A stretch of DNA of 64,000 bases from Auanema rhodensis (lineage: Eukaryota > Animalia > Nematoda): positions 7,316,001-7,380,000 of the forward strand of contig OZ059897.1 in assembly GCA_964057225.1 (NCBI GenBank), given 5' to 3'. The notes beneath the pieces are model-generated. The model had not been told where the DNA came from, searched no databases, and was given only the letters and a program-made list of their open reading frames with translations. The translations under genes and the position numbers were made by a program. Positions 7,801 to 45,439 of the stretch are shown piece by piece. Numbering within the stretch: the stretch's first letter is position 1; the number at the start of each line of letters is the position of its first letter.

Positions 7801-10427
7801 GCTTACTCTATCCTTGAAACGAAGGAACACATCATTAGGACTGGCAACAAGGAAAACACTTTGCAAAGCATCAGCGAAGTTCAGATGATTATCTGTGTGA
7901 GATCTCTTGGTACCTCCAAGGATCATATCTTCTGGCCAGCGCAAGACAGATGGAGCAAATCCTGGGCATCCACCAGTCATAGTAGATCCGTAATTAGGGA
8001 ACTTAGGGAATTCATCCTAAAAATGTCATTCATAGACAATGAAATGCAAAATTCAGATACAAACCTCAGTAAGGAAGTTTACCCATTTTCCACGATTTTC
8101 TTGCATCCATTTCATCATTCCAGATCTCATCTTCTTACAAGAATTTGCTGAAGAATATAAATTACAACTCGAAGCGAATATTCAAACATACTTAATTTTG
8201 TGTTATTTTGTTCAGGTGCAACAGTGGTTGTAGTTGTTGTGGTTGGAAGTGCAGCAGGTGTGCCATCAGTATCTCTTTTCTTTCTGGCTCCAAGTAGAGA
8301 AAACAGTGAGTTCAAAAGATCTGGAGCTTCACCACTCTCCTCTTGCTCTTCTTCATATACAACGTGGATTCCATTTTGTTCGGTGTATTCAACAAATCTT
8401 TCCAAGTATGGACAGACATCGTAATAATTTGGTGCAAGCGTTGGACATTCGGGATCGAGAGGATTCATGCAGGGACGATCAAGGTAGCCATGACCGAGAC
8501 CAGCCTAAACAAGAAAATAAGAAACCATATTGAGAACAGAACTACTCACTCGTTCGAAGAAAGAGAAATGAGATCCTAGTGACATAATAGAGTTAATTTC
8601 CGTTACGACAGCAATGGGATCAAAATTAGTCCATTTAATTTTATTAGATTTAGGAAGTGAGTTCAATAATCCACCAATAACTCCGAGATCGCTGGAAAAT
8701 AATTTACAGTTTTCATAGACAAGACCGAAAATGCTCACTTCTTGGTTACAGGGGGGAAAGGACCTAATGCTTTTCCTCCTTCCCAGAAACAATCAATGGG
8801 GGTAATCCAAATGCAAGGAACAATTCTTTCAATTACATGTTCAAATGACTTGGCCATGGGGTCGTCTCCGAGCGGTGCAGCAGGTTTGAAACAGATATCA
8901 TGGAGAGTCCAATTGCTAAGAGGACAAAAAAATAGAATAATGAAACAACAAACATTCATACCTTCCGTGAACTTCAACTTTCATTGTTGCAATCTCTTCC
9001 ATAATTTTTACATGTTTCAGTAATCCGTCTAGTGATAAAGCATTCTGTCCCGGAAATTCTGGTGTTTGGATCACAACCTTCAATGATCAACATGAGAAAA
9101 CAGAAAACAACTGACTAAAGAATACCTGATACCCTCCACCTAGTCCGTTTTCTCGAACAATTTCCACACTTTCAGAATCATTGAATTTAAGATTTTGCTG
9201 CACATTGTTAAGGAAATTAAGTTCTTCGTCTAGTCGTCCACCCTCTTAAAAAAAACATTAAATTTGAAAATCTGAGAAATAGAACTTACGAGCTACCCAC
9301 AGCTTGACTATATCTGTCTCGATACGGACATACTGGAGACCATAACAGCAGATAGAGAACAAAATCAAAATAGTACATATAACTGTGGAAGCATTAGCTT
9401 GTACAAAATTTCCTAAGGAGAAGAGAAGTTTTTGGATAAAACTTCTTGAGTACAAAGCCCATTGGTTTCCAGTGGCTTTTCCCTGAAAAATTTAAATCGT
9501 CAGCATTTTTCTTCACAGGAATTCAAGAAATTTCATGGTTTCATCGATGAACAAATCGCAGATTACTTCAACAAGAATTAAAGACCTACGCGACATTAAC
9601 ACTTTTGGCCTTGAATTCAAACATTAAACTCAATAGCGCACTTTTGTATTTCCGTGTGGTCAGTGGAATGGAAATATAGTAAAAAAGTATTGTTAAAACC
9701 AATATTTTCGTTGAAAATCAACTTGAATACAATTTGAATCATCTTTTTCCCATTAGAAGATAATTTCAACTATAGCTTATATATGAAAAATGCAAATAAG
9801 GTCATTCATGCCACTCTAATAAAGACATTTGCTCTCTCTCATTCTCTCATAGTAATTTCGAAAACGCCATCTGGTGTCAGTAGAGACAACAGAATGAATA
9901 CTAAACAGAGAAAACACAGAAAAATCGCAGAACTACACACGTGTATACATATTGTGCATCAAAACGTAGTCATCGTATGAAAGTTACAGGTAAACAAGGG
10001 GAAATAAACAAAATACTCCAAGTTAAGAAGATAAGAAAACTCACTCTTTTGATTTGTTGCAGACAAAGATCTGCATCACACCAAGACGGCCGTTGCCTAA
10101 ATTCTTTTTTCCACCTGCTATTATATTCATCTGAGCTAGATTTCCAAACAAGGCAACGATCAAGGTACTGAATAACAATACATGAAATTAAAGAAAAAGA
10201 AAAAGAAATTTACATTTAGAAATGAATTCCTATTACCGCTTATCAGCTCATTTGGAATATCGTAATCAGTTTCGGCATCGAAATAATCGTCCTCGTCTGG
10301 CGCTAAACCAGAAACAGTTTCAGTCAATACACACCGAATACTCACCTAGGTTTAGTAAATGTTGAGCAGATCGATTTGAAGGCCCCTGGGAACGCTTTGC
10401 TCCTGGTGGTTCAAGAAGTGTTAGCAT
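4862..10427 (-). CDS. ptc-1: Patched family RND/sterol-sensing-domain protein, multi-exon
   Basis: The N-terminus MLTLLEPPGAKRS...SAQHLLNLG matches my recollection of C. elegans PTC-1. Other motifs: SWCDADLCLQQI, ETDIVKLWV, PCIWITPIDCFWEG, the SSD with FNAATTQIVPFLTLGIGVDNMF, the second RND repeat GIGVEFTAHV, and SEFEFVVKYFF. The last exon ends ...PGLMMRGHI* (TAA 4864-4862). Confidence 0.95.
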
Positions 10428-13400
10428 AGGATATGGAAAGGAAAGTGCCACAGAAGAGCTTGACGCTTCTGTCGACACAAGTCCTGAAAACAACAGAAAC
10501 GTTAAACAGGGAAGCACAAATTAGCCTTAGAATTGTATAAATATAGATTGTACGTTTATATATATAAACCTATATATAAATAGAACATCAAAGAGAAAAG
10601 TAAAATACTGATAAGATAAAATATTTCGAGAAATATGTGAATCATTTAAGCAAAAAAGCAACATGAGTCATTTAAACAGAAGTATAGGCAACTATAGGCA
10701 TAGAGACGAAGAGAGTATTCAAACGTTATTGCTTGCGAGCGGAGAGAGGAAGAGAAAGAGAAGGAGACAGAAGAGAGGGCGAGCGCATGTCGCCCGCGTT
10801 GTCGCCAGCGAATTATGGGATAGAATGACGATCGATACACAGGAGGAAAATGAGGTGAACGGCAGCCAGCCCGCCAGCCCGACGACTGCCGGCCTGCCAC
10901 AGCCATTCCACATAGGAGATACGAATGGAGGCAGAAAACGAGAGACATGGAAAGACAGAGAGAAAAGAGCCATTTCTGAAAAATCGATTCACACAAAAAA
11001 AGAACTTGCCCGTGGCATTCATCGAGCCAACAGCGACATTGCATAGAAGATTAAAAAAGAACATGCAATATAAAAAGTAAGAACAAGTAAGAACAAGTAA
11101 CAAACATCAGAAAAGGAACTGAATAGTTGGACATTATCCAAGCTGAAGTTACACCATATAATAAAGAGCAGGAGAAGATTACAAGTTTTATAGCAACTAA
11201 GGCGTCCGAAAGATATGCTACATAGTTACGATATTGAACGATATATACGCCATTAGCCCAGGTGTGTAGTACATGGTTTTGGCGGATAGTAGATCACAAT
11301 TGATCTATATCAGATCGTGATAACTACATCTTGCATCCAAATATCTATGTTTCTATATGAATGCATATATATTTACAAATAATACGTTGTGAAAGAAATG
11401 AATTATAGCCAAATTAGTGATAGAATGAGGAGAAGAATGAGCACGCGTAATCAGGTGATTTTACCAAACAAGAACAGTTCCCTGAGTTGTGGGTGTATGT
11501 ATCAGATGACAAGAAATCCATTGCGATCATGTGCCATCAAAATACAGCTATACCCTTATCAGAGGTTCGGATTAAAATGAAAAGTACAAACATAAACCTG
11601 TGTGCTTCAATGAAAAGTGATAGAAAAAACCCTGAGGATGGTCTTATTGAGGAACTCTCTAAGTTTGTCATTTCCTACTAAAAGGAGAAACGAATTTGGT
11701 GATTGAGCTCTTAAAAGATCATTGGGACAGATAGTTTCAGCAGTCTGGCCGTGTAGACATTCAAAGCTCCAGCGTACTATGAACATCTGGATAGGGTATC
11801 CAGAGGTTGTACGCACCCAGAATACAAACGTGTCCCAGGCATATGGGATTGAAAAAAAGCATAGAGGAAGAAAGATATTACATATAGTTAAAAGAACCAA
11901 GCAGTAAACGGAGTTATCATATTGAAAACGATAGATGATACAGATTAAACAGCGCAACTTCATGGATGGAATAGAATAAACAAAATCGGATGACGTCAGT
12001 ATTTGAAATATACCTCGTGAACGGTTGACATGAGGGACTAGGTAGTGAATGAGTTGACATGATAGTTGGCGAAAGCAAAGGGAAGAATACTCTTTGGCGT
12101 CGGTGGCAATGCCATCGCAATTTTAATCGCTTTGAAGCACTTTATGGGCAACAATCAAGTGAGTGCTCATGTGAGAAGGGCTCAATTTCTCAACAGGCTG
12201 AAGCCGATGTTGCAACGACACAGAAACCCGTCTTTGTCGTTCAGTCAGAACACAAAATCGCCGCAACTGAAGCAATCAGCTCATTTGCATAGTAAGAGGA
12301 GTAGATAAACAAAAAATTAGAACTCTTTTCCCAAAAAGTGCAAAGTGTAAGAAAAATGCTCAGCTACCACTTTATTCAAGGTAAAATAAGGCTTATTTTA
12401 GTCAACACCAGTACTACTGCCAACAGCTCGCTGTACTGGCTGGCTTAACAGACAACCAGACAGAAAACACGATGAAGGCACTCGCCAAAAACAGCTAGAG
12501 TGGCAGGGAACCCGATCGTTTGTGGCCTAATATTTGTCAAAAAGCAGTCAGAATATATTAGTGGTTAAGCCATCTTCGAAAAAGAACAAAAATGATTCAA
12601 TAGTTAGTTGAAAATAGTGGTTATTGCTTGTGAAAGGATATCTGAGCTCTACAAAGAAGTTAAGATAAGTAATAGGGTAACTGCTCGCAAATCTCAAAAA
12701 CAAAATGAAACAGGCGTGAGAGACACATACACACACATACACATCACAAAAACGTTGTGACGGCATATGTTGCTTGGAACTGAAGAACGGCCACACATCA
12801 TTTTCAAGCTGAGTTCATCGCTCAAAAAAATAGATTTTAGCGACAATCGGAGGAATGCAGGCTAAAGACAGCTGTGTCTTAAGGAATCGGTGAGAAAGAG
12901 GAAAAAGAGAAAGAATTGGGTGCATTACATCGCCAGCCTTTCAAGCACTGGAAAAAATGACGAACAAGAGCATAAAGAAAGATAAAATATCACAAAAATG
13001 AGAAGTAGTGACAGTGAAAATGATGAAAGAGACCAGAAGGAGAGAGGGAAAATAGCGATACACAGCAGCATTGTTTAGTGACAGCTTTTCATCATTGTGG
13101 TACGCAATCACGTAATCTTTTCAGTCTTTTAAAGTGCAAATATCAAAATGGATGTAAATTAATAGAGAAGTTCGGTAGTATGAGATACTAAAAGCAAGAT
13201 AATTGAACAAACAAGATAAGGTTGGAGAATTACAAAAAACAGCGTCCTTTAAAGCAATCACTAATGATAGAGCACGTGGCGCCAATTCAAATATGTGCTG
13301 CTGAAATTTAAATATTTTTTTTCAGAAGAGCAGACTTTCTGCAGATTGTGACGACGATTTGGCATTTTAAAGTTTTTCGTTTAAAAATAAGATGATGTAA

Positions 13401-27900: not shown

Positions 27901-30900
27901 CCTTGCGTTAGAAGGAAGCAAAGACTTAAGGACAACAAATTCAGATAGACAACGTAAGTTTTCATTGAGGTATCTGATGTTATCAACGTTTGACTTGTTT
28001 CCTTTTTGTCTCTCCAAATTCAACTTTCCTCGTCTCGTTTACTCTCTTTTTCCATCCTCTCACACTGCTTCCCGCCGCCATTTTCTCGTTTTTAAAGAGT
28101 TTTCAACGCATTGTTAACATAAACGATTAGTTGAATAAGTAAGGATTGTAAAAGACGTTTTGTCGACGAATATTGGTAAATCAACATCAAATTTCAGTTG
28201 AGACGATAAAAAGGGAAGGGGGGGGAGGTTGCCAATTTCTCGCCTTTCTATTGTATCCGTTGTTTACTGATGAGCAAAAACTCCATATGATCGGGATAAG
28301 CAATTCGTAAGTCACAAGGTAATGAAATCAAAATCAGAAATCAAAAAAACAGAAGAAGAAGACGAAGAGGAAGAATTGAAAATGAAAGAGAACATCACCT
28401 TTGGTGCCATCTCGTCGGGAGCATGCTTGCTCAGCACGAGAGTAACTCGTGCATTCCATGATTGAGCCCATTCGGTCAACTGATTTGCAAAGATAACATC
28501 ATCTACTGTGCGTACACAATAAAGCAAGCAGATCCGACGAAGAGCAGAGTTGGAATTGTCTTCCGACAGTAAATGGTCCACAATTCGTACAAATGGTGCG
28601 ATTCCGGTTCCGGCTGCAGCAATGAGTAGGTGAGAAGCCTGAAAATGATGATGCAATAGAGTTGAAAGATCTCGAGAGATTTTCAGCAAGAGTATATGAG
28701 CAACGAAGCACTCCAAATACTCCAAAACGTCTCATGAGTATATCTTGGAGCACAACATAAGGTCAAATACATAAACCAGCACATATATCATTAAAATACA
28801 AACACATTTTGCTATATCGTAGTCAAAAAGAAAAATAAACAAGTGATTCAAAAGAAAATTCAAATGTAAATTGAAAATAAGAGCACAAGCTTTATGATGC
28901 TTTGAATTTTCATACACCAGCCTCATGAGCAGCTCTGAGAGCATTAAATGTAAATAGACTGTTTTCATTTGTTTTTTTGGCCCCTCATGTTTTGGCCTTC
29001 TGTCCATCATCATCAAGATTTCTTTATCTTTTCAATGCTTGATAAGAAAAGTCATGAGAATGAAAAGCTAATAAAGATTGAATTTCAAGAACTATTCCGT
29101 GTATATAGCCCATTCACTAGATACATACATCGACTGGCTCATGATTACGCATTCCACGTGAACGTCATTCTACACGAAGCAAGGGGTTGGGAGGGAGGGG
29201 GGCACAATTCGGCTGCTTTTTCATCTTTGTTACCGAATTTTCTTGTGTCATATTATCAAATCAAATGAGTAAAGTAGGAATAACATACGTTTTTCCAATC
29301 TTCTTCTTCAGTATACGGACCACGACACTCAATCATATCGCCGACTTGCCAATGACGAACTTGTGCTGATAATTGTCCATCCTTATAAACCTTAAAGGAT
29401 ATTTCGTTTAAAAATTAAACAGATGCTTGATAGTATTAAAGATTAATTCCCAACTCTTGGGCAGCTGCTACCTAGTCTCTGTTTATCTGTCTAGTTTCTC
29501 ATCACTTATCATCATGTTGTGGTCATTTGTGAATTTATCTGTTTTTTTTTGTTTTTTTTTAATAAAAAACAAAAATAAAAACATATTTCTTCTTCTTTTT
29601 CTTCAGAAAAAATATATAAACACGTATGATATGAGCATGTACATGTTGTTAAGTTGGCAAAAAAAGGTTTCAAGTATGTGTATACGCATGTTTGTACATG
29701 CTGAAGCTTTACCTCAACTCTCTAAATCATCATCACCCGTGACAACATCACTCAATTTCTCTTTCAATATTCATAATTTACCTTTATGGGAACTTCGAAA
29801 AATTCTTTTTCAACCCTTGTCGGAGTATACTGACGCGAAATGTAGTGATCATTCAAATTTAACCTACAAAAAAAATTATTTTAGCTGAAAATTTATTCTT
29901 TTTTTTTAATTTATTTATAATTCAAATTATTTTGTTTATGCACAGTTGCTAGTTCCTGAAAAAAAAGATTCAATTTGAAGACAGAAAAATTATTTTTTGA
30001 ATACAATCATAATAGAAATCTTTATTCTTATTTAGATAAATTATGAAGAAAAGTGCGCAGATGAAGATGGTAATACGGAGGAAAATAACATGAATTCTAG
30101 ATATTATTCTGCGTTAACTAGACAAATATTCAGATTAACTCATCTGAAATGTCTGAAATTTGATTTTCAGCATTAAAAAAGAAATGAAATTTGAGAATAA
30201 TTGAAGGTAGACGAACAACGAGACACTTTGTTTGCCCAAACTTCGTTCTATTGGCTTATTTTGGAGATCGTGAAGAAAAAATGCATAGGTCTAGGTGGAG
30301 GATGAGGGTGTTGGCAGAAAAAATTATTTAAAATAGTTTCTATCCTCTATTACTATGAATTACATAGTAATCATAAGGATATATCCCACAAGAGGCAAAT
30401 ATGGCTTTAAGAATGGACCAATAATTGGAGTCATTAGAATGTAATCAACAATCATCCAGTAAGCTTTAAATTGTAATCGACCCCATGATGGGAAAAAGCG
30501 GACATTCGTGTATGAGACATCAACTTTTCCCTGCTCCATACGCTTACGAGCCTGCTCAACCTGAAACAGTGAGATTATTTGAAGCTTAACTTAGTAATAC
30601 AGTATGTAAGAAAATACTCAAGAATTCGTCAAGTACAAACCTTTTGGAAGTTGCAGGTGCCATTGTTATCAGTGAAATGAAATCCGAATCTTCCAAGTTG
30701 CATTAGTTTAGATCCTCCATCAGTTTCACAATCAAGTTGGATGATATATGGAGGATTTTCTTGAGCAGTATACATCCATTCCCATGAGTGAGCAATTCTA
30801 TAAAAAATAAAGATAAATATATGAAATATATAGTTAATAATAGTTTGATATTTGATGATCCCCCCCCCCTCCCCTGTCTTTTTCTCTCTCTTTCTTTGTA

Positions 30901-33900
30901 GTTTGTACAAACAACATAGCCCAACTTAAAGAACTGAGACTTGTAGTTGTGAAATTTAACTGGCATACTTAGGTTAATAGACACTCACAAAACCAGAATA
31001 TAAAACTAAAAAAACATCGAAAAAAAATAAGACGTAATAATAGATTTAGAAAATACTTAAAAAGAAATTATAATGTGTGATTACACACTTCATCTCTTAA
31101 AAATGAACAAAAAACATGTAGCTAAGATAAGAAAATGAAAACACAACCGATCAGCAGGCATTACTATTATAAAATGAAATAATTTGCATAATTATTGTAC
31201 AATCAATCGATATTTGTACAAATAAATAATTTTTAATATTTTCTCCGGAATATCCAGTTTTCATAATATTTCCGTTTTTCTTCTTTATTTTTAATAAGTT
31301 GTCATGAAAATAACTTGCTTGTATCTTGTACTCTAGATGAACTTCATAGCTCATTGAGTAAGGTTAGAGAAGACTAGTGTATAATACGATTTCCAAGTAA
31401 AATATCGTCAAAATACGGTAAAAAACGATATTTAGATTGAAAATAACGAAAAATTGCAAAGTATACTGTATGTCTTCCAAGTGTTTTTCATGTGAAATTT
31501 CAGGAATAAAGAATTGAAGATCTTACTTGTGAGGAATGAATGCACATCGAGGTTTTTCCCAAGTATGGCATTGATGGATCATTACTCCCATATCTGGAGT
31601 ATACCAGTGAGCAAGTTTATCAGAAAGTCGTTCAAAGAATTCCAATGTATCATTGTTGGCACGGATGAAGAAGTTAGCTCCTGAAAATAATAGGAATAAC
31701 TGTTCTCAAATTAGTTCTTTTTTTCTAGTTTTGAGAGAAAGAGAGAGAGAGGATAGAGAGAGATTTCCTTTAAGATTAAAGAATTTCAGAAGTCGAGATG
31801 AAGAAACTATAATTCTTCACCAATTTCCCCAAACCCTCTCTTCTCACCAAACGCATTTTTTTTGAAAATCGTCCAGTTTCCTTCTGAACATTTCAACTAT
31901 TACATACCATAAATAGGCAGAAAATGATGATACATGGAAATAAAAGAAAGAAACTATTGAGAAATAAAAAAAACGACAAAAAACTCTATTTTCTATCTAT
32001 TCATCAGGTATTTTCAAGTTTAACAGCCTTATCTATTTTATATTGAAATGAAAATTCAAGCGTACCGTTTACCCATTCAGCCCTCATGCTGTTCTCATCG
32101 ATACCGATTTGATCAAAGATGGCATCATAAGACATATCATCTTCATATCCCAACTCAAAGAGATTTCTTCTCCAGAATGTATCTTGTTGCATCATCCAGA
32201 AAGATTTTCCTCTTCGAAGTAAAGCAACAGCCAAGTTGGATCGAAGTAAGTAGATTGTCTGATATGGTCCTTCAGCGAAACTGAATGGCTTCTGAAACAT
32301 CATATAGTCTTAATCTGATCACATTTCCGCTAATCTTTAACATTTTCATTAGTTCGCGAGAATTAAATTACTGAATCTTATTGGAATAACTTTCAAACTA
32401 CTTTGAAACAGTGAAATATTAGTATTCCCTTCTCAACTCTATCTAAGTATATTACTGTTTTTCGTTAACTCAATCACATTCCAAACTGTCAATTCTCTGT
32501 AACCTCCTGATTTGTCTAGAATTTCATGTTCTAATTCTGAATGAAATTTCATCACACATGACTGATTTTTCAATAATTCAAATATTATATTCGATGAATA
32601 ATGGTATATATCGAGAATTAACGTCGTCTACATACAGTCGAGCCATCATCATGAATGTCTATAAAAAGAAAAAAGTTTGGGAATGGGCTATGTGTAGACG
32701 ATAGACCTCTGCGAACAAGAGAACGATGATGAGGATGAAATGGATAACTTTCAAATGAACATATACAACATGAGGATGATGACGAACGATGACCTTGCAG
32801 GTTTGACATCCCTCACCTTTCGTCCTCCTAGTACCCTGCATACCATACTCCTGCACCTCATCCCATGCTTTACTCTCTTCGTCCCTCTTAAACTTGGTTT
32901 CGCATCATTTAACACATACGCCTACATTCACAGTCATACTACTCTAAATTTATCGGATTTGCTATTGATCACTTGACCGTCAGACCTTCCGGTAATCCGG
33001 AAAAGAGGAGAAACGTTCTGAAGATAATCGTTTACCAGACGGAATTAGACCAATCTTATCTTCTTTCGCTCCTTCTCTTACTAAATCTCCTTCAAATTTC
33101 CATTCTCTTAAACTCTCTTATAGTATTCTTAGTGGGCTTTCCTCTTAAGTATACGAAATAAGGACAAAAAAATGTTTAAGAAAATCCGAAGAACAATCTT
33201 TGAAGAACAAAAGTAAAATCGAATTTGAAATTGATGATGAATTTGCGTGATTGTCTCTACAAATCAAAAGATCATCTTTCATTTGTTTACGAAAATAAGA
33301 TTGTTCGATTAAATTTAATTAAAGTTGATAATTATGATTTCAATCCGCTTAATTATCGGAATAAATGAGCGAAAACACTTGAAAAAACCCTAAATCAGGA
33401 CACAAATTGTTTTGTGGGCTAAGACTCTGCTGCTTATTATGAACTAGTTTAAACATATTCGAACGAAAAATCGACACTCTTTTCCGGTTTAAACGTTTTT
33501 TTTTGGTAGAGGGGAGGGGGCTTTATCACACTTTATATTAAATATTTTCAGAAGCCAGAAAAAATTTTCCTTAAACAAACAGCAATTAATTTCAAAATCC
33601 CGAACATTCTCAGTTTTTATTTTTATGAAAAAAAAGAAGAAAACTCACATAGAGACTTGGTGTTGGCCAATGGAATTGACGAATTTGTGGCCAAGCTTTC
33701 TTCAATTCATCACGAGCAACTGTATCCAAAGTAACGAAGATGAGACGCTCGTGAACTCCATCGAGAGTGGCGGTGTTACACAAGAAGTTGTATGTCATGT
33801 TGAGAGCATACTGATTCAGAAGTAAAATTGCGGGAGGACGGGTGAATTCGGTATCTAATGTGTGAATGAGGTCTTCAAATTCGGGAGAATTCTCAATCAA

Positions 33901-36284
33901 ACGAATAGCTACGGAATCTCCGTGGCTCTTAACGTAGCGAACGGCGGCAATAGCATTTTGAGTTTTACGGAGAACCAGCAGACCGAATACGAACCAGAAT
34001 CCATAAAAACACAGCATGACAATACGTGAAATCCAGTGCCACTGACGTGGTGAGATCCAAACAACATCTTCAGTTTTACCCACAATTTTCTTCTGTGTAG
34101 TATTCTTAGGTTTCTGTTCTACAGCAGTAGAAGCAGATTTTTCATTCTTTTCACGTTCACTCTTGCTTGTCTGAACGTTACTACCAGCAGTCGAAGGAGA
34201 AATACGATGGCGCAAGCCTGTGCCTGTCGTCATCTGAAACAGACGGCAAATATGAGGATATGTAGAAAGAAGCAAAGCAAAAGTCGTGAAAAAAATGAAA
34301 TAAATGTTAAAACACGGAAAGCTGAAAAATGATTATGCAGGAATGAAATACGATCAGAAAGACAATGAATTAATAAAGAATTCTAATGAAAAATGAATTA
34401 GAAGAAAACAGAATCACATAATTAGGAACACTTATTAGAGCTGACGACTATTTCCGAGCAATACATAACAGCAAAATGACATTTTTTCTAGGAATTGATG
34501 TACAAATGATCTTATTGTTTGATGTTAAACTGTTCGCCAAACCAGTACAACAATTTCGAAGAGGAGGAGCCGAAGTTCATGTTCTATCAATAAGAGTTGG
34601 AAGCATGAAATTGATGAGAAGCAGCTAATGAAGGTGTGTATATGTGCTGACCATCCATGATAAAAATATTATGAACAGAGTAAAAGAGTTAAGTGAATAT
34701 TCTGAGAAAGAGAGAAAGATCGAATGAGAGATTCCTGATTCAGGTGCGAAATGGATGAAAGAAAAACGGTCAAGAAGCGAGACGACCCCTCGACAATACG
34801 TCAAGAAGTACTGATTGCGGTAGATACGAAGACTTGAACGAGAGATAGCAAGTTACGGACATTCTGACGCGTTTTTTTTCTCAAACATTTTCAGAAATAG
34901 TCCGTTCACTGGAATTAGGTTTGAAATGATTGCTGGACGTTGTTCAGAAATGCAGTAAATAGGAAAGGTTGGAAGAGTCTCCAACTGAGATCTGAAAGTC
35001 AGATTGAACATCTGCCTCCGAATTCTGTTCTCAATTTTTGATCAACCAAGTCGAATGAAATGAAAGATATTTCATAAATGATAGAGAATATGCTCGTAAG
35101 GCCAGAAAAATCTCGAAATATCCTATAAAGTAGTTATAAATCGATTTATCGGCTCAATAAAACTTCATCGAATGAACCTCATCGTTGGAACATCAGTCCG
35201 ACCATAGTCAGTAGGAACGATTCTGTTAGATCGATTGATCAGCAGAAGTACATACGCCCGACAAAGTTCAGACGGTAACGCTGACGTAGGCCTTCAACAT
35301 TCTATTCTAGATGAATAGACAACGATAAGTGTAGATGGCAGGCGATTAAGGAATTACTGGATTTTGAGCAGTCGAGTGATATCATCAGGTAAACAGATAC
35401 ATGTTCTCGAATCTCCCATTCTTCCAAGCTCGTCAATCACTTTTGAAAATCATTAACCTTCACATGGTTTAGTATTTTTTTATTTTAAAAAGTTTAAAGG
35501 CATTCGTAAGAAGAAGAAAACTAATGAAACAAACAAAACAAACTATTCAGAGAAACATGGTGCCAATACCAACTTCTACAGAAACTGTACATGTATGTGT
35601 GTGTGTGTGTGTGTGTGTATGTGGTAAACATGTAATATAGATGAGGATGTTTTGGGAAGCGAAAAGAAGTAATAGTTGAACACTTAGAAGAAAAAAAAGA
35701 AGTTCAAGTGAAAGAGAGAGAGAGCAAAAGAGAGAGAGGGACAGAGAGAAAGAGAGAGAGAGACAGGATGGGTAATACTTAGGCAAGAGAAGGAAATAGG
35801 AGAAGACAAGGAACGTATTTCAGGTAGTTTCCGGTTCCTTATGTCTAATTGTGGCGTCTCTGTCTATATATGATTGTCTTCTGTTATGAGCAGGTTGCTT
35901 CATCGAACAATAGCGACCAAGAGAATGTTGGTCATTATTAACAAGTTATCTTTCATAAACATTCTGAGAATGAGACACAGGAAAGAGAAAGAATTTAGGA
36001 TGCTATGCTGCAGGTTGATGATGAAACGAAATGATGATCGAGAGCAGGTTTGAAACATCGAAAGGAAGATTAAGGTAGACGGAAAAGCAAGCACAAAAAT
36101 ATCATAACAGACGTAGATATCAGTCAAGACGTGTATGGCAGTATTAAAGTAAAATCAGTAAAGATAACATCGATAGATCGGCCAAGGCTACCGCAAGTAA
36201 GGCTGGTGTACATTCAACCTTCAGCTATCTCATCCCCCAGGCCACAGGGGGTTGAAAGATAGTAGAGCCTAACGACATGGACAG

Positions 36285-36377
<93 letters not shown>

Positions 36378-39372
36378 AAGAGAAAAGGGAGAAAGAGCGA
36401 AAGGTAGAAGGCAATGATGAAACAGAGAAAAAGAGATTGAAAATGGAAATATAGATAGACAGCCCATAGTTTAGGGCTATGAAGGGAAATAGAGGTCAAC
36501 GTCAGGATGAGTATGACATCAAAGTGTTCCGTGAAAATCTCTAAATAACGAATGTTGAAAGCAAAAAACAGCATGTTTTCAGAAGCAAAAAACCATGTTT
36601 TTATGTGCTCATGGCTAATGCCACGAGAACAAACTAATTAATCTAGTACAATGTGAAGGTATTTCAGAATTGAAGAAGTTGCACAGTTGACGGCAGAAGG
36701 GATTATTGCAAAAAGTGGAGACAGCTAAAGCCTGTAAATGACCCAATTCAGTTCACAAGACCGGCCCAGTGATCCGGCACCCGCATGGTCGGTGGAAATC
36801 GTTGAGTCTCCAAACGTTCAGTGATAATCAGTGCAGCGTAAAAGTGATAAATTATATGCGAACGAGTCTGGCGCTGAATCTCATCCTGGGATGATAAAAT
36901 AGTTCTACTCTTCAAGTTTCAAGCCAAGGATATCGCACTTAAAGATAAAAAGAGAGAATGGACGTCCGAAAAGTTGAATAAGCGTATAATTATGACAAAG
37001 GAGATGAACAGTAGAATGATACTGAATACCATACATTCAAAGAATCTGGAGCAGATCATGACAGCGTTAGAACAATGACTAAAGGATGATTTGCACTAAG
37101 CGATCTGTAAAGGGTCAAAAAGGGACGGCGAGACGGAGGACGGATTGAATCGACAATCATCAAGATGACCTTGCACCCAACCAACTATGTGCTTGGTAAA
37201 GTTAAATTGGCTTGTAATCACGCTTTGTAACAAGAAATCATAGGATTAACCTTCCGATGTTGGGAACTCAAAAATAGCGTGGATGACATATATCAACCTA
37301 GATACAATTCATCAAGCAATTACGCTGAAAACAACAACTTAATGCTACGTTGCTAATATGCTAATATGCTAATTTGATGAACTAAAAATTATGAAAAAGC
37401 GAATTCATTTACACAAGCAATAATCTCTCATGCGGTTGCATTTTACGTTTACATCTTATCTTTTTTCAGCTTATTTTCCAAACATGGCAATTATTAACAT
37501 TTAAAACAACCATTGGATTATACCATGCTCCAAAGCTACGAATTAGCAATGGCGCAAACTACTGATCTATTGCTTAACTATACGGAATAAAGCGTTAGCT
37601 ATAAAGCGCTGTTTTAGTTCAATTTCTTTTTTTTTAAAGCTACTAATCTAATAGACATGAGTCGCCATCAACGACGATATGATGATCGCAGGCATTATCA
37701 ACCCAGGTCTGCTAAACGTGGGGGAGCTGTACCTGATAGGTGAGTAAATATTGTATTTACAACTCCGATTGTTTAATTTTCAGGTGGCTCCATTATGATG
37801 CTGTTGGAAAGGATATAGAAGGAACTAGATTTGTTCCATTTAAGACTCCTCTTCATCCTCATGTTTTCAACAACCCTAACTTGTATGATGATACGTTTCA
37901 TGTAGATATTCTTCTTCAATATGTAAGTTTTCGTTAAGATTGTTAAGTTATATCCATTGTATATAGGCTGCAGAGGCTGGACACTCTATTGGTCTTGTAA
38001 TTGATTTAACTAATACTGATAGATATTATGACAAAACACAATGGGAGAAACACGGAGTGTTGTACGAGTAAGTTGTTTCTGAAGTTAAAACATTGGTTGA
38101 TACACATTGGTTTCAGAAAAGTTCGTTGTCCTGGGCACGAAGTTCACGAAAGAGAAGATGTAGTGGCAAAATTTTTCGCAATTGTAGATAATTATTTCAA
38201 TACACGTAAAGACAGTAAGATTTAAGCTTCGAAACAAGTTTTAAAAAATTTCATTTTTTTCAGCTTCACTTATTGGAGTTCATTGTACACACGGGCTCAA
38301 TAGAACGGGTTATTTGATATGTCGATATTTAATTGAGCGCTTAGGATGGTCCGCTGATCAAGCAATAGCAAGTAAGTTTTCAAAATGCATATATTTTAAA
38401 ATTGTAGTTATGTAGGTTTCGAAGATGCTAGAGGACATCCAATAGAACGACCGCAATACAAAGAGAAGCTTCACGAAGTTGAAGCTCGAAAAGTAATAAT
38501 AGTACAATAGAACAACTAGAGCATATTTTTGAATTTCAGAAAAGTTCTGAGAAATTCGAACAAGTCGAACAAGGTGATGTAGGAAACTGCAATGTAATTG
38601 ATGATAAGGAAGAGGTGAAGTCTAACAATAGTCAAGCTGTACCAGACTTATGATGTCTCTTGTTACAAAAATTGTTGTTATATTGTTGTTTTGTTATGAA
38701 AATCCTACCAGCATTGTTAGAAGAATTGAGTAAAATTAAATATTCTAATTTTGACGGAACTTACGTGAACTAGCATTTTATTTATCAGAGAACTAGCAAC
38801 TGTGCAGGTTGGTTTCACTTTTGAATTTTGAAATATGGTAAATGAGCGCACCTTATTCTTATATGACTAGCGATTGGAATCAGAATTGGCTGTGGAGTTT
38901 TGAGTTTAACAAGCACTGTGTGATCGTTTAGATTTTCAATATGCGCGAGCTCTAATGGTCTGAAATAAAGTATTAGAAAGATCCCCTTAGACTATAAAAC
39001 CTAAATTCAGAAGAAAACCAGTCCTTAGATTCGTTTGTAGGTTCCGAGTCATCGAAAACATGCTCATATAAAGTTTTATCTTCTAAAGCAAGAAAGAAGT
39101 ATTCATAAGACTGTTAATATATACCATGCTTGATAAGTTTACTATATTCTTTTGCCCAGCGAACTACATCATCAAAGTGTATATCGAAAACACATGGTTT
39201 ACATGATTGACCACAACAATCCTGCTCGTTTAAGATAAATATTTGAAAGAGAGAGCAAATAAAAAACCTGAGGAAATGGTTCGTTAGGCTCTTCCTCATA
39301 TGTGTTCCCGCATTCAGTGACATGCTTCCGAACTAGGCGAACAATCTCATCGTCGGCTTTCTTCAGGTTCAT
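18319..39372 (-). CDS. NADH-cytochrome b5 reductase-like protein (CYB5RL-type: N-terminal oxidoreductase-like/OXLD1 Cys domain + FAD- and NAD-binding FNR fold), 9 exons, 335 aa
   Basis: Phase-consistent GT-AG exons: 39372-39268, 39221-39125 ([13 protein letters not shown]), 39082-39001, 38959-38852, 29863-29782 (ISRQYTP, the FAD RxYT motif), 29390-29289 (GQLS...GDMIECRGP), 28638-28399 ([12 protein letters not shown] binding), 26984-26886 (GRLSQEIM), 18411-18319 ([12 protein letters not shown]...RFHS*). They total 1008 nt with no internal stop. Confidence 0.93.
19650..19691 (+). repeat. (TC)n microsatellite
   Basis: Perfect TC run in the last CYB5RL intron. Confidence 0.95.
21235..21315 (+). 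repeat. (AG)n microsatellite
   Basis: About 40 perfect AG units; a further imperfect AG tract lies at ~20960-21035. Confidence 0.95.
24873..24938 (+). repeat. (GA)n microsatellite
   Basis: About 33 perfect GA units. Confidence 0.95.
30360..34233 (-). CDS. Nucleotide-diphospho-sugar transferase family protein (Nucleotid_trans-like, type II membrane), 5 exons, 440 aa, nested on the same strand in CYB5RL intron 4
   Basis: tttcag|ATG at 34233. Exons 34233-33649, 32291-32066, 31680-31527, 30797-30641 and 30560-30360 are all in phase. There is an N-terminal TM segment ([18 protein letters not shown]), then [38 protein letters not shown] and a hydrophobic C-terminus ending YILMITM*. Confidence 0.88.
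36290..36371 (+). repeat. (GA)n microsatellite
   Basis: About 41 perfect GA units. A short (TG)n also lies at ~35595-35618. Confidence 0.95.
37657..38653 (+). CDS. pir-1: RNA 5'-tri/diphosphatase, DUSP11/PIR1 family, 7 exons, nested antisense in CYB5RL intron 4
   Basis: MSRHQRR...VPDRWLHY...[10 protein letters not shown]...[14 protein letters not shown]...VRCPGH...[21 protein letters not shown]...[11 protein letters not shown]. The catalytic [10 protein letters not shown] motif is present. No guanylyltransferase domain follows (stop TGA 38651-38653), so this is not the capping enzyme. Confidence 0.93.
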
Positions 39373-39390
39373 CTAAATTTGGATATTACA

Positions 39391-39907
39391 ATGGCTTGTC
39401 CAAGACATCTAAATAATTTTGAATGTTGCGGAACACTTATAAAATGTCCCTATATAAAGGTAAATATTTGAAAATTTAAATTTGAAAATAGAAATAATTC
39501 TAGGAGCATCATGCTTCACCATTTCATATTGTAAATCACATTTTTCAATGTCGACAATATCATGGTAATACTGAATTGGTGAAGTAAATTGCTATGTTAG
39601 AAAACGAATGTTTATAATGAAAACATTAAGATGTGATTGTAATACAAAACATTTCTTTCCTGAAGCCGAAAGAACGTTTCATGATAAGTATTGCGACAAT
39701 CGAGGGTTTCAAGAGATTTTTAGAATATTATATACAAAACCTGCAACTGATAGTGGTGGAACTTACTTTAAGTTAACTAGAGTTATGATAAACTATTCAG
39801 ATACGGACGACTCTTCCAATATATCTACAGCTGATTTATCAATGGATTCTATGATAGAAGATCAAGGACACAACTTCTTTCTAGATGACTATTGTTCTGA
39901 AGCATAA
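39391..39907 (+). CDS. gtsf-1: Tandem CHHC (U11-48K-type) zinc-finger protein with acidic tail; gametocyte-specific factor 1 homolog
   Basis: ATG 39391; exons 39391-39459, 39504-39583 and 39631-39907 (a possible in-frame 45/48-nt intron ends at 39800). There are two exact C-x5-H-x9-H-x3-C fingers, CPYIKEH-HASPFHIVN-H-IFQ-C and CDCNTKH-FFPEAERTF-H-DKY-C, followed by a D/S-rich tail. This is the GTSF1 architecture. Confidence 0.82.
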
Positions 39908-40085
39908 GGTTACTCAACACGAGATGCGTCAAATGGCTAGTTATTCGGACGTGTCGTTACAGAAAAAAGAAAAAGAACAAGAAAAAAAGAAAAAAATTTA
40001 TTATTAAGCAATTCGCAGAGATCAATCATGTTGCAATCAGTATTGTTATCACCCTTATTACAAGCAGAGCAAAAGAAGCAGTATA

Positions 40086-43000
40086 TTAGAATCGTTTTTT
40101 GTTGTTTTTCTTTTTGTTCTTTTTCACCGAAGTAGAATTTTCGGAACCAGCTGAAACAAAATAAAATATATTGAAAATTTAAAAAAGAAACTACGTTGTG
40201 TAGCCGGAACTTCAGTTTTACTTGCCACAGGATGGTTTGCATTGTTCCCTTTTTTCGAATTTATATTAGCTTCAATGCGTCGTTCAGTCTGAACAGTATC
40301 ATCACTTTGCAGAGAAACAAGTTTGCACGGAAATAAGACTAATACCTGTGTTTTTATGGTTGGGTCACCAATTTGACTTGCAATCGACTGATAGCTGTGA
40401 CTAGCTGAAATGAAACATGAGCATTCGCTACGTAATACTAAATTAACTTGGCATCATAGAAAATCCGGAGCTTTCTATCTTAAATAAATGATTTTCAGCA
40501 GTGAGTAATGGCTTCTCGTCTTCAGATTTACCTGAAAAATGAACATACCTTCAAAGTTTACAACTAAAGTTACTCACATTCATTGTCTGTTTTTCCCTCA
40601 TTGACGGAAGCATAAGCATAGACTGTTTTTGGCTTAAACAACAAATATGGAATGGAATTTAGAGGAACTTTACCTTGATATAAGAAAGCTCGACATCATT
40701 TAAATAACGAGCTTTTTGTCGCTCATTTGTTTCCACAATGAAATCAGATAGAAGAGAAATTAATATACGTAATGAGGGAATAATTTCCTAGAATAGGAAT
40801 TGAAAAATATTTTAAAATTATTTCTCTTTGAAAACTTACGGTTTTTGACATCTGAGAGAACATAACCGCTTGACTGAATAAAACATTAAGCTGAATAGAT
40901 ACAACAGCAGGACGTTGATAGTTCAATCCTGTCATCACATGTTCGGAAGCACTGGAAAATTAAAGTTCTATGAAAATCATCAAAATTAAAGTTACCCAGT
41001 AATATTGGTAGACATGCACATCTTATTTCTTCGCAATAAAGTCATCTAGGAGTCATTTTACTTTACATTTGAAGAAAATTGAATCAGAATACCTCATTTT
41101 CCATATGAGCTCTAGCCAACTCGCAAAATCCTTGAAGTAACTCTTGAGCTATCAGCTTTGGTTCTGCAACTTTGTCCAGTGAACCTTCAAGAACTGGGGT
41201 ATCTTCGCCAACTTCAGGATTGAGAACCTATATATAAACAATCATTTAAGAAATAGCTGGTAGAATCATACTCTCAAATATGCCAACTGAGCTGCTTTCG
41301 CGACGATAAGTATAGGTTGGATAAATTGCAGTCCCCAGTAAGAAAATTCACTCAAATATTTAAGTGTATTACTACAGTGGAAAGGTCCCAGAAGCTTAAA
41401 AAACAAAAAGTTTGATAGAAACATGAACAAATCGAACCTCGATCAACCGATTAAGAAGTGGAGTAAGACTGGCAATTCGAACAGCAGCATACGATCTGCC
41501 TGTGCAATCAACCAAAGCTATAGCAATCTGCTCAACCAATAGATCAGGTAAAGGAGTAATCGCAATACCTAAATAAAGAGTTTAAATCACAAATCACTCT
41601 ACTAGCTAACCTTCTTTTAATAGATTGAGAGTCATGTCAACATCGAATAAGCCGAGTTCAAATAAAGACCGCAAGAAGCAGTTAACCGTGGCAGATTTGA
41701 AATCAACAACAATTTGCTCACATTTCTCTTGAACTGATAAAGGCAATGCTTGGAACAAACCACAAGGAATCTGAAACATATTGATTAATGACATTTCAAA
41801 AATTTGGAACACATTACCTGTTGTTTAGGATTTCCCAACGAGAATCCAAACCATTCGATAAGGCAGTATCTGACCCACCAAGGATTCTGTGACAATTTGT
41901 TAAGAATGAAAGCGGATGACTTTGCACAGAAAACAATCTTGTCGTCTAAAGGGGAAGTAATAAACTGTGAATGTTTTCAGAATCAATACCTCTAAGTTTG
42001 GTTCCCAAAGCTTTGAGAATCAATCTACATAGATTGGACATCTCTGGTTCGTTTTTCTCATATTGAGAGTAGAAGCAATGAATGAGTATAAGCAATTCAG
42101 GTGCAGGAACACTGTGACATTCTAAGAGAAAAAAATGCAAAACTTTGAGACAATAGAGCAAAATTTACTTTTCCAGTCACTACCAACACTATTGGTCCAC
42201 TTGAAAGATGTATCTTTAACTCCAAGACATTGAAGAATTCTGAAGATCAAATGTTACAAAATAAGGAAAAGTTTACTCCAACCTATGAACGATTTTCAAC
42301 AGAGTCATACGTTCCGGACTTGTGATTGAAGCGGACAATAGCTTAGGAAGAATGAAAAACTGGAGAATATCAGAACTATTCAACAAAGCTTCTTCTATAA
42401 CTTCACCAAAAACTTCACGGACAACTTGGCCTGTATTTTTCATAAAAATTACTTTAAATGCTTAGGAACTTACCATCAGGCCCCTTTTCTCGGATTAGGG
42501 CTAGTTTTCTTCGACAAATTGATGTTACAAGGTAGGTATAATTATCTCGGAACTCTACAGAGCCATGTCTAAAGGATAAAAATGGAATAAACCAGAAATA
42601 ATAACGATTAACCTGGTAGCTTCTTTTTCAAAAATCGACTTGAGGATTGTCACTAGGAGAGGTTCTTTAGTTCCTTCAGCGATGTTGAAAGAATAGGCAT
42701 ATAGAGAAGATGAAGCTTGTAAAATTTTCAAAACTCCAGGCACAACAGCCTTGTTATCAACCGAATAAAGAATAAGCTTTTCTGTTGTTTCATAAGGTGA
42801 CATAAGCAAGAAGAACAAGAGCTAAAAGGAAGTTTCTCTAAGGAAAAAATATTATGAATTACCTTATTTTGAATATTTGCAAACTTTTCAACATTTTGCT
42901 GCAAATCATTGTGATCGCCCAAAGAATTTAAATATTGAGTTAGCCGTGTGGAGTATTGCTGAATAAATAATCGATCATTTCTGATTTGAAGAAAGATAAA

Positions 43001-44335
43001 ACCTCAATAAAGCTTTGGTAACAATAAACTTTAGTTGATCCAAGTTTTTCCAATAACAGATGGAACAAAGCATTCTGAAATACAGAAAATATTAAGAAAT
43101 GATATTCTTTATAATTGAAAAAAACCTTGTCTTTTAACCCTGTTAAATCAAAAATTTTCTCCAGAACCTCAGAAAATACTTTAGCATTTGATTCATTTTT
43201 TTTACTGTATAAATTTGACCAATATGGAAGAAGCCTGAAAAAAAAACTTCAACTCAACCAAAGGAAGAACCTTGATACTTACAGTTTGAAAACAGTTTTC
43301 GATGAGTCCGTAGAAAGTTTGAAGTCTTCTGGTAATGAATCAGCAGAAATGCTTTTCATCAGCGCTACATCGTAGTCTTTCTTCTTCAGTTTTTCTTCCA
43401 ACTTAATACGAAAATCATAATATTCAATAATAAAATATTGTCGTACTTTTTTAATTTTTGAAACAAAGTTGTTTTCGGTATTTTCAGGTTCTTGATTAGA
43501 AGATCCAACAGTTACTTCTTCTCTTATGTATATTGGTTCAAGAGATTTTGAACTAGCTGATGAACCCTATAACTGGCTAAGTTAAAAGATGAAAACTATC
43601 AATATGGCAACCTTTTTCAAATGTTCTCTTAGAGGAAGAGGGAAATTATCAAATGACAAGTATACTAGAAAGATATAAATAAGTTGATCATTTACTACAT
43701 ATCTTACCCAGATTTTTCGTAACATTTTCAATTTGATCCATAGTTGTATCAAGTTCACATAACCCTGACATAGGTATCAAACCCTATATTCAATTATTTT
43801 TCCAATTTAAGCAATTCCGAAACATACCTCAATCGTACGACATTTGTATATTTCCCAGAACAATTTTATACGTTCAATTAGCAAGCATTCATCTTCTCTT
43901 GATAAACTAGAAGACAAAAAGAAATGTGAGCCGAAACAAGAGTGTCAACTAACCCCATCTTGATGGATCCTTTTTTGAATAAAGGAAACAAGTCATGTTC
44001 AACGAATTTAAGTAGTTTTATAACTATTGAGGAACATTCAGTTAAAATTTGTTTGTCTTTCGTAGCATTAGACAAAATGTCTGCAAGTAAATAAATAAGA
44101 TTAATGTGTAAAGTAAGAGATCAAGCAAATCTTTGTTAAAGTAAAGTAACTGACCAAGCAATTCTTTGTTATTTCCAAAACAATAATTTGAAAGAGCTTC
44201 AACATTATCATACAAATCTAATGCATACAGAACAGTATTCTCAAATTTGTTTAACTGAAATAGCAAATGCTGACATCAATATATGGATTATATACTTACT
44301 TCCCGCAGGCAGTTTTGAGCAATCACAGCGGCCAT
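40086..44335 (-). CDS. Large multi-exon alpha-helical protein of unknown function with a basic C-terminal NLS-like tail
   Basis: tttgcag-caATG at 44335 (MAAVIAQNCLRE). More than 20 short exons have canonical sites, and the 5' and 3' junctions I checked join in frame (e.g. LLMSPYETTEKLILYSVDNKAVVPGVLKIL). It ends ...KKNKKKNNKKRF* (TAA 40088-40086), with AATAAA at 40002-39997. Confidence 0.8.
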
Positions 44336-45439
44336 TGCTGCAAAGAAACAAATACAAAAATTAGCAACGATAGAAAGATTTGTGGAGAAGAATGACACAA
44401 AAAGAACAAGAACACAGGCAAATTGATAAATAATTCAGGCAGTACTCTGATAGAAATATTAGATATGCATTGCATATCTCTCATGATTCAGCAATAAATG
44501 CCACAGATGGTCAATATTAATTGTCTTAACTGTTGGCAAATGGTACGACATTACAGAAGCCATAAGCCAATATGCGATATGGATTGAAATAAATTATGCC
44601 CGGGTCTTCCTTCGATTTTCTTCTAACAGACCGAAGCAGACCACTGGGCAATTGAGTGTGCTAGCACCATTCACATTCACTGAACATACGTTCGCTCCAG
44701 TCCCATGGGTTAATGCAGAAGCCAATAGTCATTACTACTAACTAGTGAGTGTAATAGTTTAGGGTTTTCAATAAGAGTAATATGAGAAAAAAACAATTTT
44801 TTTCTAATTTTTGATAAATATAAAATAAACACAAATAACCATGAAGCTAGAAAGAGTCACAATTGCATTAAAAGTATTCAAATGAACTCGATTCGCACTC
44901 AATTCTCATTCAAAATGCATTAGAATGGTTTTCATTTAATGTTTGAGTTAATTAAATTAGAGCAAAAACAGTTTTATCACTTTGTATCAAGAAAGCTGAG
45001 AATATTGAAGACGATAGCACATCAATAAATTCAATATTTTCTAAAAAAAATCAACAAGCATTTCGTTATTCAAATTATCATAAGAATTTTGCAATAAACA
45101 GCATAATTAATTGCTGATACATGCTTTTTCAGGTTTTTATACTTCCAAATTAGGGTTTTATTAATATCCAATACTCTCTACCAGAAAGAAGAACGTGCTC
45201 TGCTGAGAAATAAAATGACCCAAGGCTAGATAAATTAACATGCTGAACAATATGTTCTAATTGGAAGCTTCAAGTTCTATTATCAAATTAAAATAAGATG
45301 TTTTCGTTTCAAATTCATGAAAAACGATTTATCCCCAGTTGTAATTTCAAACGTAACTGATTATTTTGCTCGTGAATGCCTTGTGAAGTGGTTGCATTTT
45401 GACTAGTTTGGCTTTCCTTATTAACTTCTTTAACTTCAG

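Follow-up and report, generated by a model that had tools for sequence, protein, structure and literature searches.

Two unrelated genes of the nematode Auanema rhodensis, a CYB5RL-type gene on the minus strand and a GTSF1-like gene on the plus strand, were found to begin head to head within a 64,000-nucleotide stretch of its genome (hereafter the window: contig OZ059897.1 of GenBank assembly GCA_964057225.1, forward-strand positions 7,316,001 to 7,380,000; coordinates are those of the window). Their start codons are separated by a spacer of 18 bp (39373-39390), and our analysis confirmed that this arrangement, with acceptors reciprocally embedded in the opposite partner, is real. It had been proposed in an earlier note made from the sequence; on re-reading, both ATG positions, the 18 bp gap and the motifs tttcttcag, aaatttag and ttatttag all proved to be correctly placed. 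Each of the two gene models is spliced with its reading frame preserved. Since an AG just 5' of an ATG is expected by chance, AG/ATG motifs alone carry little weight, and it is the RNA contigs, in which two independent cis junction forms use the plus-strand acceptor within CYB5RL exon 1, that take the reciprocal pattern beyond chance. The start region is made up of:

39370-39372, minus strand: start codon of the CYB5RL-type gene, read from the sequence, with an in-frame TAG (39375-39373) immediately upstream; the sole in-frame ATG of exon 1
39391-39393, plus strand: start codon of the GTSF1-like gene, read from the sequence
39358-39366, plus strand: GTSF1-like acceptor tttcttcag (AG at 39365-39366), within CYB5RL exon 1, used in RNA contigs from donors 38808 and 39279
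39373-39380, minus strand: candidate trans-splice acceptor aaatttag abutting the CYB5RL ATG, from the sequence and from a contig end at 39372 in run X4 (depth bookkeeping)
39409-39416, minus strand: second candidate acceptor ttatttag, within GTSF1-like coding exon 1, known from sequence alone

The RNA data were Logan contigs of four public runs (X1 to X4), all belonging to a single study, and were taken to be RNA because of their many GT..AG and CT..AC joints. Binned depth was treated as contig depth multiplied by the letters covered and divided by 196, a relation that was verified on the contigs of the pir-1-like gene described below and of the upstream gene. With this bookkeeping the exon model reproduces every X1 bin from 38822 to 39997 within rounding. 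In X4, depth is zero at 39410-39605, and bin 39214-39409 holds 113 letters (8 + 105) at the depth that the adjacent bin sets; as 113 letters equal 8 plus the 105 of CYB5RL exon 1, the X4 CYB5RL contig should end at 39372, the A of the ATG, at the AG/ATG acceptor.

On the plus strand, X1 record 2 (919 nt) was resolved into 39125-39278, 39367-39459, 39504-39583, 39631-39755, 39801-39908 and approximately 39963-40150, and then runs onward. Between 39278 and 39367 lies an 88-nt GT..AG intron of the plus strand with its donor at 39278/39279, and X1 record 1 adds a plus-strand acceptor at 39010/39011. At least 39249-39278 must be plus-strand RNA, because 31-letter words span the junction, and probably the whole of 39011-39278 is. 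A contig of X3 opens at the acceptor AG 39366 with ten loose letters, AGCAACTGTG, which correspond to 38795-38804 and are followed in the genome by CAG/GT, so that a second plus-strand intron of 38808-39366 was drawn. The same ten letters also match the minus strand at 29941-29950; that placement was rejected, as it needs a switch of strand while 38795-38804 has CAG/GT on the correct strand. We likewise rejected a single X3 contig spanning CYB5RL exons and the 3' part of the GTSF1-like gene, for which canonical minus-strand splice sites were not present. X1 record 2 is itself a chimeric contig that contains introns of both strands. The two leader exons are:

39011-39278, plus strand: upstream non-coding leader exon, antisense to CYB5RL exons 1-3, from X1 records 1 and 2 and splice sites
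38795-38807, plus strand: end of a further upstream exon with donor CAG/GT 38807/38808, from the X3 loose end and splice sites

The plus-strand RNA at 38795-38807 lies about 55-65 nt beyond the pir-1-like 3' end, the exon end at 38807 being 67 nt from where the pir-1-like contigs stop. Thus, plus-strand RNA that arrives from the pir-1-like side runs as antisense across CYB5RL exons 4 to 1 and is partly processed into cis-joined leader exons. The exon ending at 39278 and the exon 39367-39459 share sequence with CYB5RL exons, so that processed RNAs of opposite strands form a head-to-head cis-natural antisense pair. The mature messages had been expected to overlap at their 5' ends, and so they do, with a qualification as to extent: the minimal forms would share only 6 bp (39367-39372), and the cis-spliced plus-strand forms overlap CYB5RL exons 1-3 far more. 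The related claim, that the outrons are fully antisense to the partner's exons, was borne out on the plus strand by the RNA running through CYB5RL exons 1-4, while a minus-strand outron across the GTSF1-like gene is an extrapolation.

The leader exon 39011-39278 holds four upstream ATGs (39060, 39126, 39194 and 39203) and an in-frame stop at 39231. Its fifth ATG, at its very end (39276-78), shares the reading frame of the GTSF1-like ATG without an intervening stop and would add 9 residues; present in one leader isoform, it is the sole candidate for a start further upstream, and neither protein begins in a distant upstream exon. The long-leader GTSF1-like forms are probably poorly translated by-products, although the X1 assembler took that path.

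The minus-strand gene is of the CYB5RL type and has its ATG where it is expected. Its first four exons are:

39268-39372, minus strand: exon 1, 35 codons, phase 0, donor CAG/GT at 39268/39267; splicing of intron 1 from the X2 loose end ACCACAACAAT, which corresponds to 39211-39221
39125-39221, minus strand: exon 2, with the Oxidored-like domain (Pfam PF09791 at 28 bits, cut-off 24), from splice sites
39001-39082, minus strand: exon 3, from splice sites
38852-38959, minus strand: exon 4, from splice sites; spliced contigs connect 38852 with an exon that ends at 29863

The X2 loose end stands at 39267 and shows intron 1 to be spliced. Two exons lie downstream of the 29863 joint, one at 29767-29856 that contains an RxYTP motif and resembles the relatives' sequence, and one that carries NAD_binding_1 (PF00175, 36 bits). 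An N-terminal Oxidored-like domain and FAD- and NAD-binding reductase domains are therefore found in one transcript. Two full-length relatives (P0007 and P0011) have the same domain order, and their CCGxGC motif lies 20-31 residues from the N terminus as compared with 35 here; as this distance resembles that of the full-length relatives, the ATG at 39372-39370 fits a true start.

The GTSF1-like gene encodes a protein of about 125 residues with an acidic tail, and its frame is intact across three coding introns:

39367-39459, plus strand: exon 1, with the ATG at 39391-39393, overlapping the CYB5RL coding sequence by 6 bp, from contigs and splice sites
39504-39583, plus strand: exon 2, completing the first CHHC finger, from the X1 record 2 letter count, bin depth and splice sites
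39631-39755, plus strand: exon 3, with the second CHHC finger, from RNA contigs and splice sites
39801-39908, plus strand: exon 4, with stop TAA at 39905-39907, from contig pieces, the X2 loose end at 39908 and splice sites

Two tandem fingers, both exactly C-X5-H-X9-H-X3-C, were read by eye in the exon translations, with no model score attached. The name gtsf-1 given to this gene in the earlier note fits the spacing of the two fingers and was not confirmed by Pfam, sequence or PDB searches. The spliced models were searched exon by exon, and the open reading frame (ORF) gave no Pfam match in that way, a test weakened by the intron that splits the first finger; a word search returned no homologue and PDB no match. 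A PF05253 profile search of the whole genome gave nothing at this place and matched only a TRM13-like locus and two spurious sites. The sole lead toward GTSF1 is an Atlas cluster with zf-U11-48K (score 0.85), which is to be taken as a lead only. Since no profile or sequence search confirms GTSF1 and the name rests on finger spacing, the label GTSF1-like is used here.

Several features were seen at the 3' end of the same gene. A 54-nt intron (39909-39962) lies one base past the stop codon, and the 3' untranslated region (39963-40150) reaches into the final exon of the convergent Edg1-like gene. Separate contigs confined to 39722-39754 and 39800-39908 occur in X2 and X3, and X4 has a similar 3' piece at a depth of about 10, with no coverage of exons 1-2. 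The acceptor gatttttag/AATATT (AG at 39722-23), a strong internal site on the plus strand, may be used with several upstream partners.

Each of the two genes has an upstream neighbour on its own strand:

37611-38740, plus strand: pir-1/DUSP11-type phosphatase gene, upstream of the GTSF1-like gene, from spliced contigs and a DSPc match (PF00782, 39 bits)
39981-40150, minus strand: last exon and 3' end of an Edg1-type TPR gene, upstream of the CYB5RL-type gene, with AATAAA at 40002-39997, from contigs of about 3.06 kb ending near 39981 and from the sequence

The pir-1-like contigs end at 38712-38740, and the Edg1-type assignment comes from PF24293 (48 bits) on an upstream exon. The spacer from the pir-1-like end (about 38740) to AG 39366 measures about 626 nt, and that from the Edg1-like end (about 39981) to AG 39373 about 608 nt, so that on both strands a same-strand upstream gene lies within operon spacing; conserved operons of Haemonchus contortus have a median spacer of 621 bp (PMC4054779). 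The pir-1-like and GTSF1-like genes adjoin on the same strand (37611-39907, plus).

As the earlier note had held, there is no room for a bidirectional promoter, with 18 bp between the ATGs and first exons that overlap at 39367-39372; the start codons being so close, neither gene can have an upstream intergenic promoter. Because the first coding exon of each opens at an acceptor in the first exon or leader of the other, each probably receives its RNA from a primary transcript with a start far upstream. We lean, by a slight measure, towards an explanation in which both genes are fed by far-upstream precursors that run antisense through the partner, are trans-spliced, and make the two genes downstream members of operon-like units. 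Of its parts, the one observed is that plus-strand RNA from the pir-1-like direction crosses CYB5RL exons 4 to 1 and is spliced at the cryptic donors 38808 and 39279 onto AG 39366. The main 5' ends of the messages would then be made by spliced-leader (SL) trans-splicing at AG 39366 (plus) and AG 39373 (minus), the operon-like units might run from pir-1-like to GTSF1-like on the plus strand and from Edg1-like to CYB5RL on the minus strand, and the minus-strand precursor would cross the entire GTSF1-like gene. Two interleaved operon-like units are the most economical and the likeliest reading of the context.

Several points weigh against this explanation. No spliced-leader letters were seen on either gene in any contig of the four runs, nor was any loose end leader-like, and among the joints listed no junction or contig places minus-strand RNA across the GTSF1-like gene. 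The 38807-ending exon was not seen to be continuous with the last pir-1-like exon in the contigs. Placing the X4 end at 39372 supposes one spliced contig, and an intron-1-retained contig ending at 39326 would give equal depth; in X2 a contig may extend from CYB5RL exon 1 to approximately 39477. Furthermore, the contigs carry no information on strand, start or end, or abundance, and all four runs come from one study and had their RNA status guessed, though the GT..AG joints show RNA. The sites that had been called trans-splice acceptors lie where they were said to lie and the plus site is used; the joints listed at the plus site are all cis-splices, carrying no leader letters, and trans-splicing is what we infer. 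On the CYB5RL side, the X4 contig end at the AG/ATG site is compatible with trans-splicing and falls short of proof, ttatttag being without RNA support.

It was also considered that there are no operons, and that each gene has its own promoter within or beyond the gene body of its partner, with overlapping outrons trimmed by trans-splicing. We regard this as rather unlikely and yet as a serious rival, since polycistronic RNA and the use of SL2 have only been inferred. The spacers of about 610-630 nt could house internal promoters, and the missing joint between the 38807-ending exon and the last pir-1-like exon is in line with them. Contig depth, a poor measure, was 75-108 for pir-1-like against about 3-10 for GTSF1-like in X2-X4, and in X1 the order was reversed (3.4 against 7.0), which on the same poor measure hints at separate control. 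Against such promoters, plus-strand RNA is already present at 38795-38807, some 55-65 nt past the pir-1-like 3' end, and the spacing matches that of strongylid operons (PMC4054779). It is a good deal less probable that the GTSF1-like message is not trans-spliced at all and exists as a cis-spliced long-leader or read-through form from the pir-1-like 3' region or earlier, as might be suggested by the joints listed at AG 39366, which are all cis-splices, and by X1, the run with the best coverage of the gene, which follows the cis-spliced path. The leader 39011-39278, with its four upstream ATGs and the stop at 39231, is ill suited to translation. The assembler would be expected to discard short leader tips wherever a longer path is available, in which case their absence carries little weight.

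That one of the ATGs is not a true start seems very improbable. The CYB5RL exons would then be the downstream part of the Edg1-like gene, for which AG/ATG 39373/39372 could take an upstream exon in phase 0, or the GTSF1-like ORF, for which no homologue was found, would be a non-coding antisense RNA. Against this, the Edg1-like gene carries a separate AATAAA, with contigs that end near 39981, the X4 contig goes no further than 39372, and the Oxidored-like domain is at the extreme N terminus throughout the CYB5RL family; the GTSF1-like frame is kept over three coding introns and includes two exact C-X5-H-X9-H-X3-C fingers. In C. elegans the PIR-1 and GTSF-1 proteins both act in endogenous small-RNA pathways. 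A stronger form of the operon explanation, which we hold to be speculative and improbable, would have two antiparallel interleaved operons in which each spacer is the other's downstream gene and each downstream mRNA can be made only by transcribing the partner in antisense, with the genes being mutually exclusive or feeding double-stranded RNA to the small-RNA pathway of PIR-1/GTSF-1.

Set beside known systems, the locus is a tidy example of known nematode gene packing and involves no new mechanism, and none of the papers searched reports a head-to-head pair with reciprocal acceptors. Partial antiparallel overlaps are reportedly much depleted in C. elegans (PMC2330155). Long outrons are known (PMC3687364), as are divergent overlapping pairs and cis-spliced outrons. 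Like divergent 5'-5' overlapping (head-to-head cis-natural antisense) pairs, the two genes lie on opposite strands with overlapping 5' exons, and the plus-strand leaders are complementary to CYB5RL exons 1-3; unlike them, the overlap here hinges on acceptors within each other's first exon, with coding starts 18 bp apart. There is also a similarity to the cis-spliced retained outrons of C. elegans (PMC10516052), in that a donor in normally discarded upstream RNA is joined to the acceptor of the first coding exon. The leader exons that arise in this way contain upstream ATGs, of which one is in frame. The C. elegans forms were defined at annotated sites of trans-splicing and largely in a mett-10 mutant, whereas here the plus-strand site is known only from cis joints and the new exons are antisense to the coding exons of another gene. 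The strongylid operons of H. contortus (PMC4054779) share with the present locus an upstream same-strand gene, a spacer of about 0.6 kb and the presence of SL1 and SL2 genes, but here each spacer would hold the first exons or the whole of an opposite-strand gene, so that the units interleave, and SL2 use and the polycistronic precursor are putative. Pairs served by a bidirectional promoter have the same head-to-head orientation; they differ in that there is no promoter-sized gap here and the exons overlap, so that a shared intergenic promoter is excluded.

The locus provides a compact natural case in which the choice of splice acceptor, and not the position of a promoter, sets the 5' ends of two opposed genes, and a defined place in which to study how a nematode copes with coding exons that must be transcribed in both sense and antisense. 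It demonstrates, too, that cis-spliced outron forms occur without a mutant background, and that gene finders which require an intergenic promoter or bar exon overlap will mis-model such pairs. There is a modest chance of greater interest, should the units turn out to be interleaved and mutually exclusive operons.

The supply of spliced leaders was examined across all 181 Mb (112 contigs) of the genome. The canonical SL1 22-mer occurs more than 3,400 times, exactly or with one mismatch, mostly in tandem arrays, four SL2 RNA gene matches lie above the Rfam gathering score, and the organism thus has spliced-leader RNA genes; an Rfam scan of 36000-45000 in the window gave no structured RNA. Very long SL1 tandem arrays lie at C3:6741531-6766485 and from C3:14134320 onward, with periods of about 252 bp and 341 bp, unlike the SL1/5S unit of C. 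elegans, which is roughly 1 kb.

Relatives of the locus were reached through CYB5RL and through a Nucleotid_trans gene nested in the 9-kb CYB5RL intron. The nested gene (33613-34275, minus) has 79-80% identity to a Trichostrongylus colubriformis protein, with the next matches in other strongylids. It was present in three strongylid loci (L007, L008 and L009), in the first two of which it lies upstream of the CYB5RL 3' exons. Exons of the pir-1-like, CYB5RL 5' and GTSF1-like kinds were absent from the upstream sequence examined, which extended over 10 kb for each of L008 and L009 and about 1.1 kb for L007, and the C. brenneri locus (L010) showed no synteny. In L007 (GCA_000402015.1) the CYB5RL FAD and NAD exons occur twice in inverted orientation (9818-10302 and 10830-11302), which probably reflects a palindrome made in assembly or else a recent duplication in inverted form.

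The donor of CYB5RL exon 4 at 38852 was spliced in X4 to 34204-34233 (minus), the ATG-bearing first exon of the nested gene, at the acceptor tctgtttcag/ATG. This 38852-to-34233 joint is a second local case in which a read-through transcript uses a likely trans-splice acceptor in cis. The large CYB5RL intron also contains long (CT/GA)n and (CA/TG)n microsatellites, at 35547-35810 and 36214-36470.

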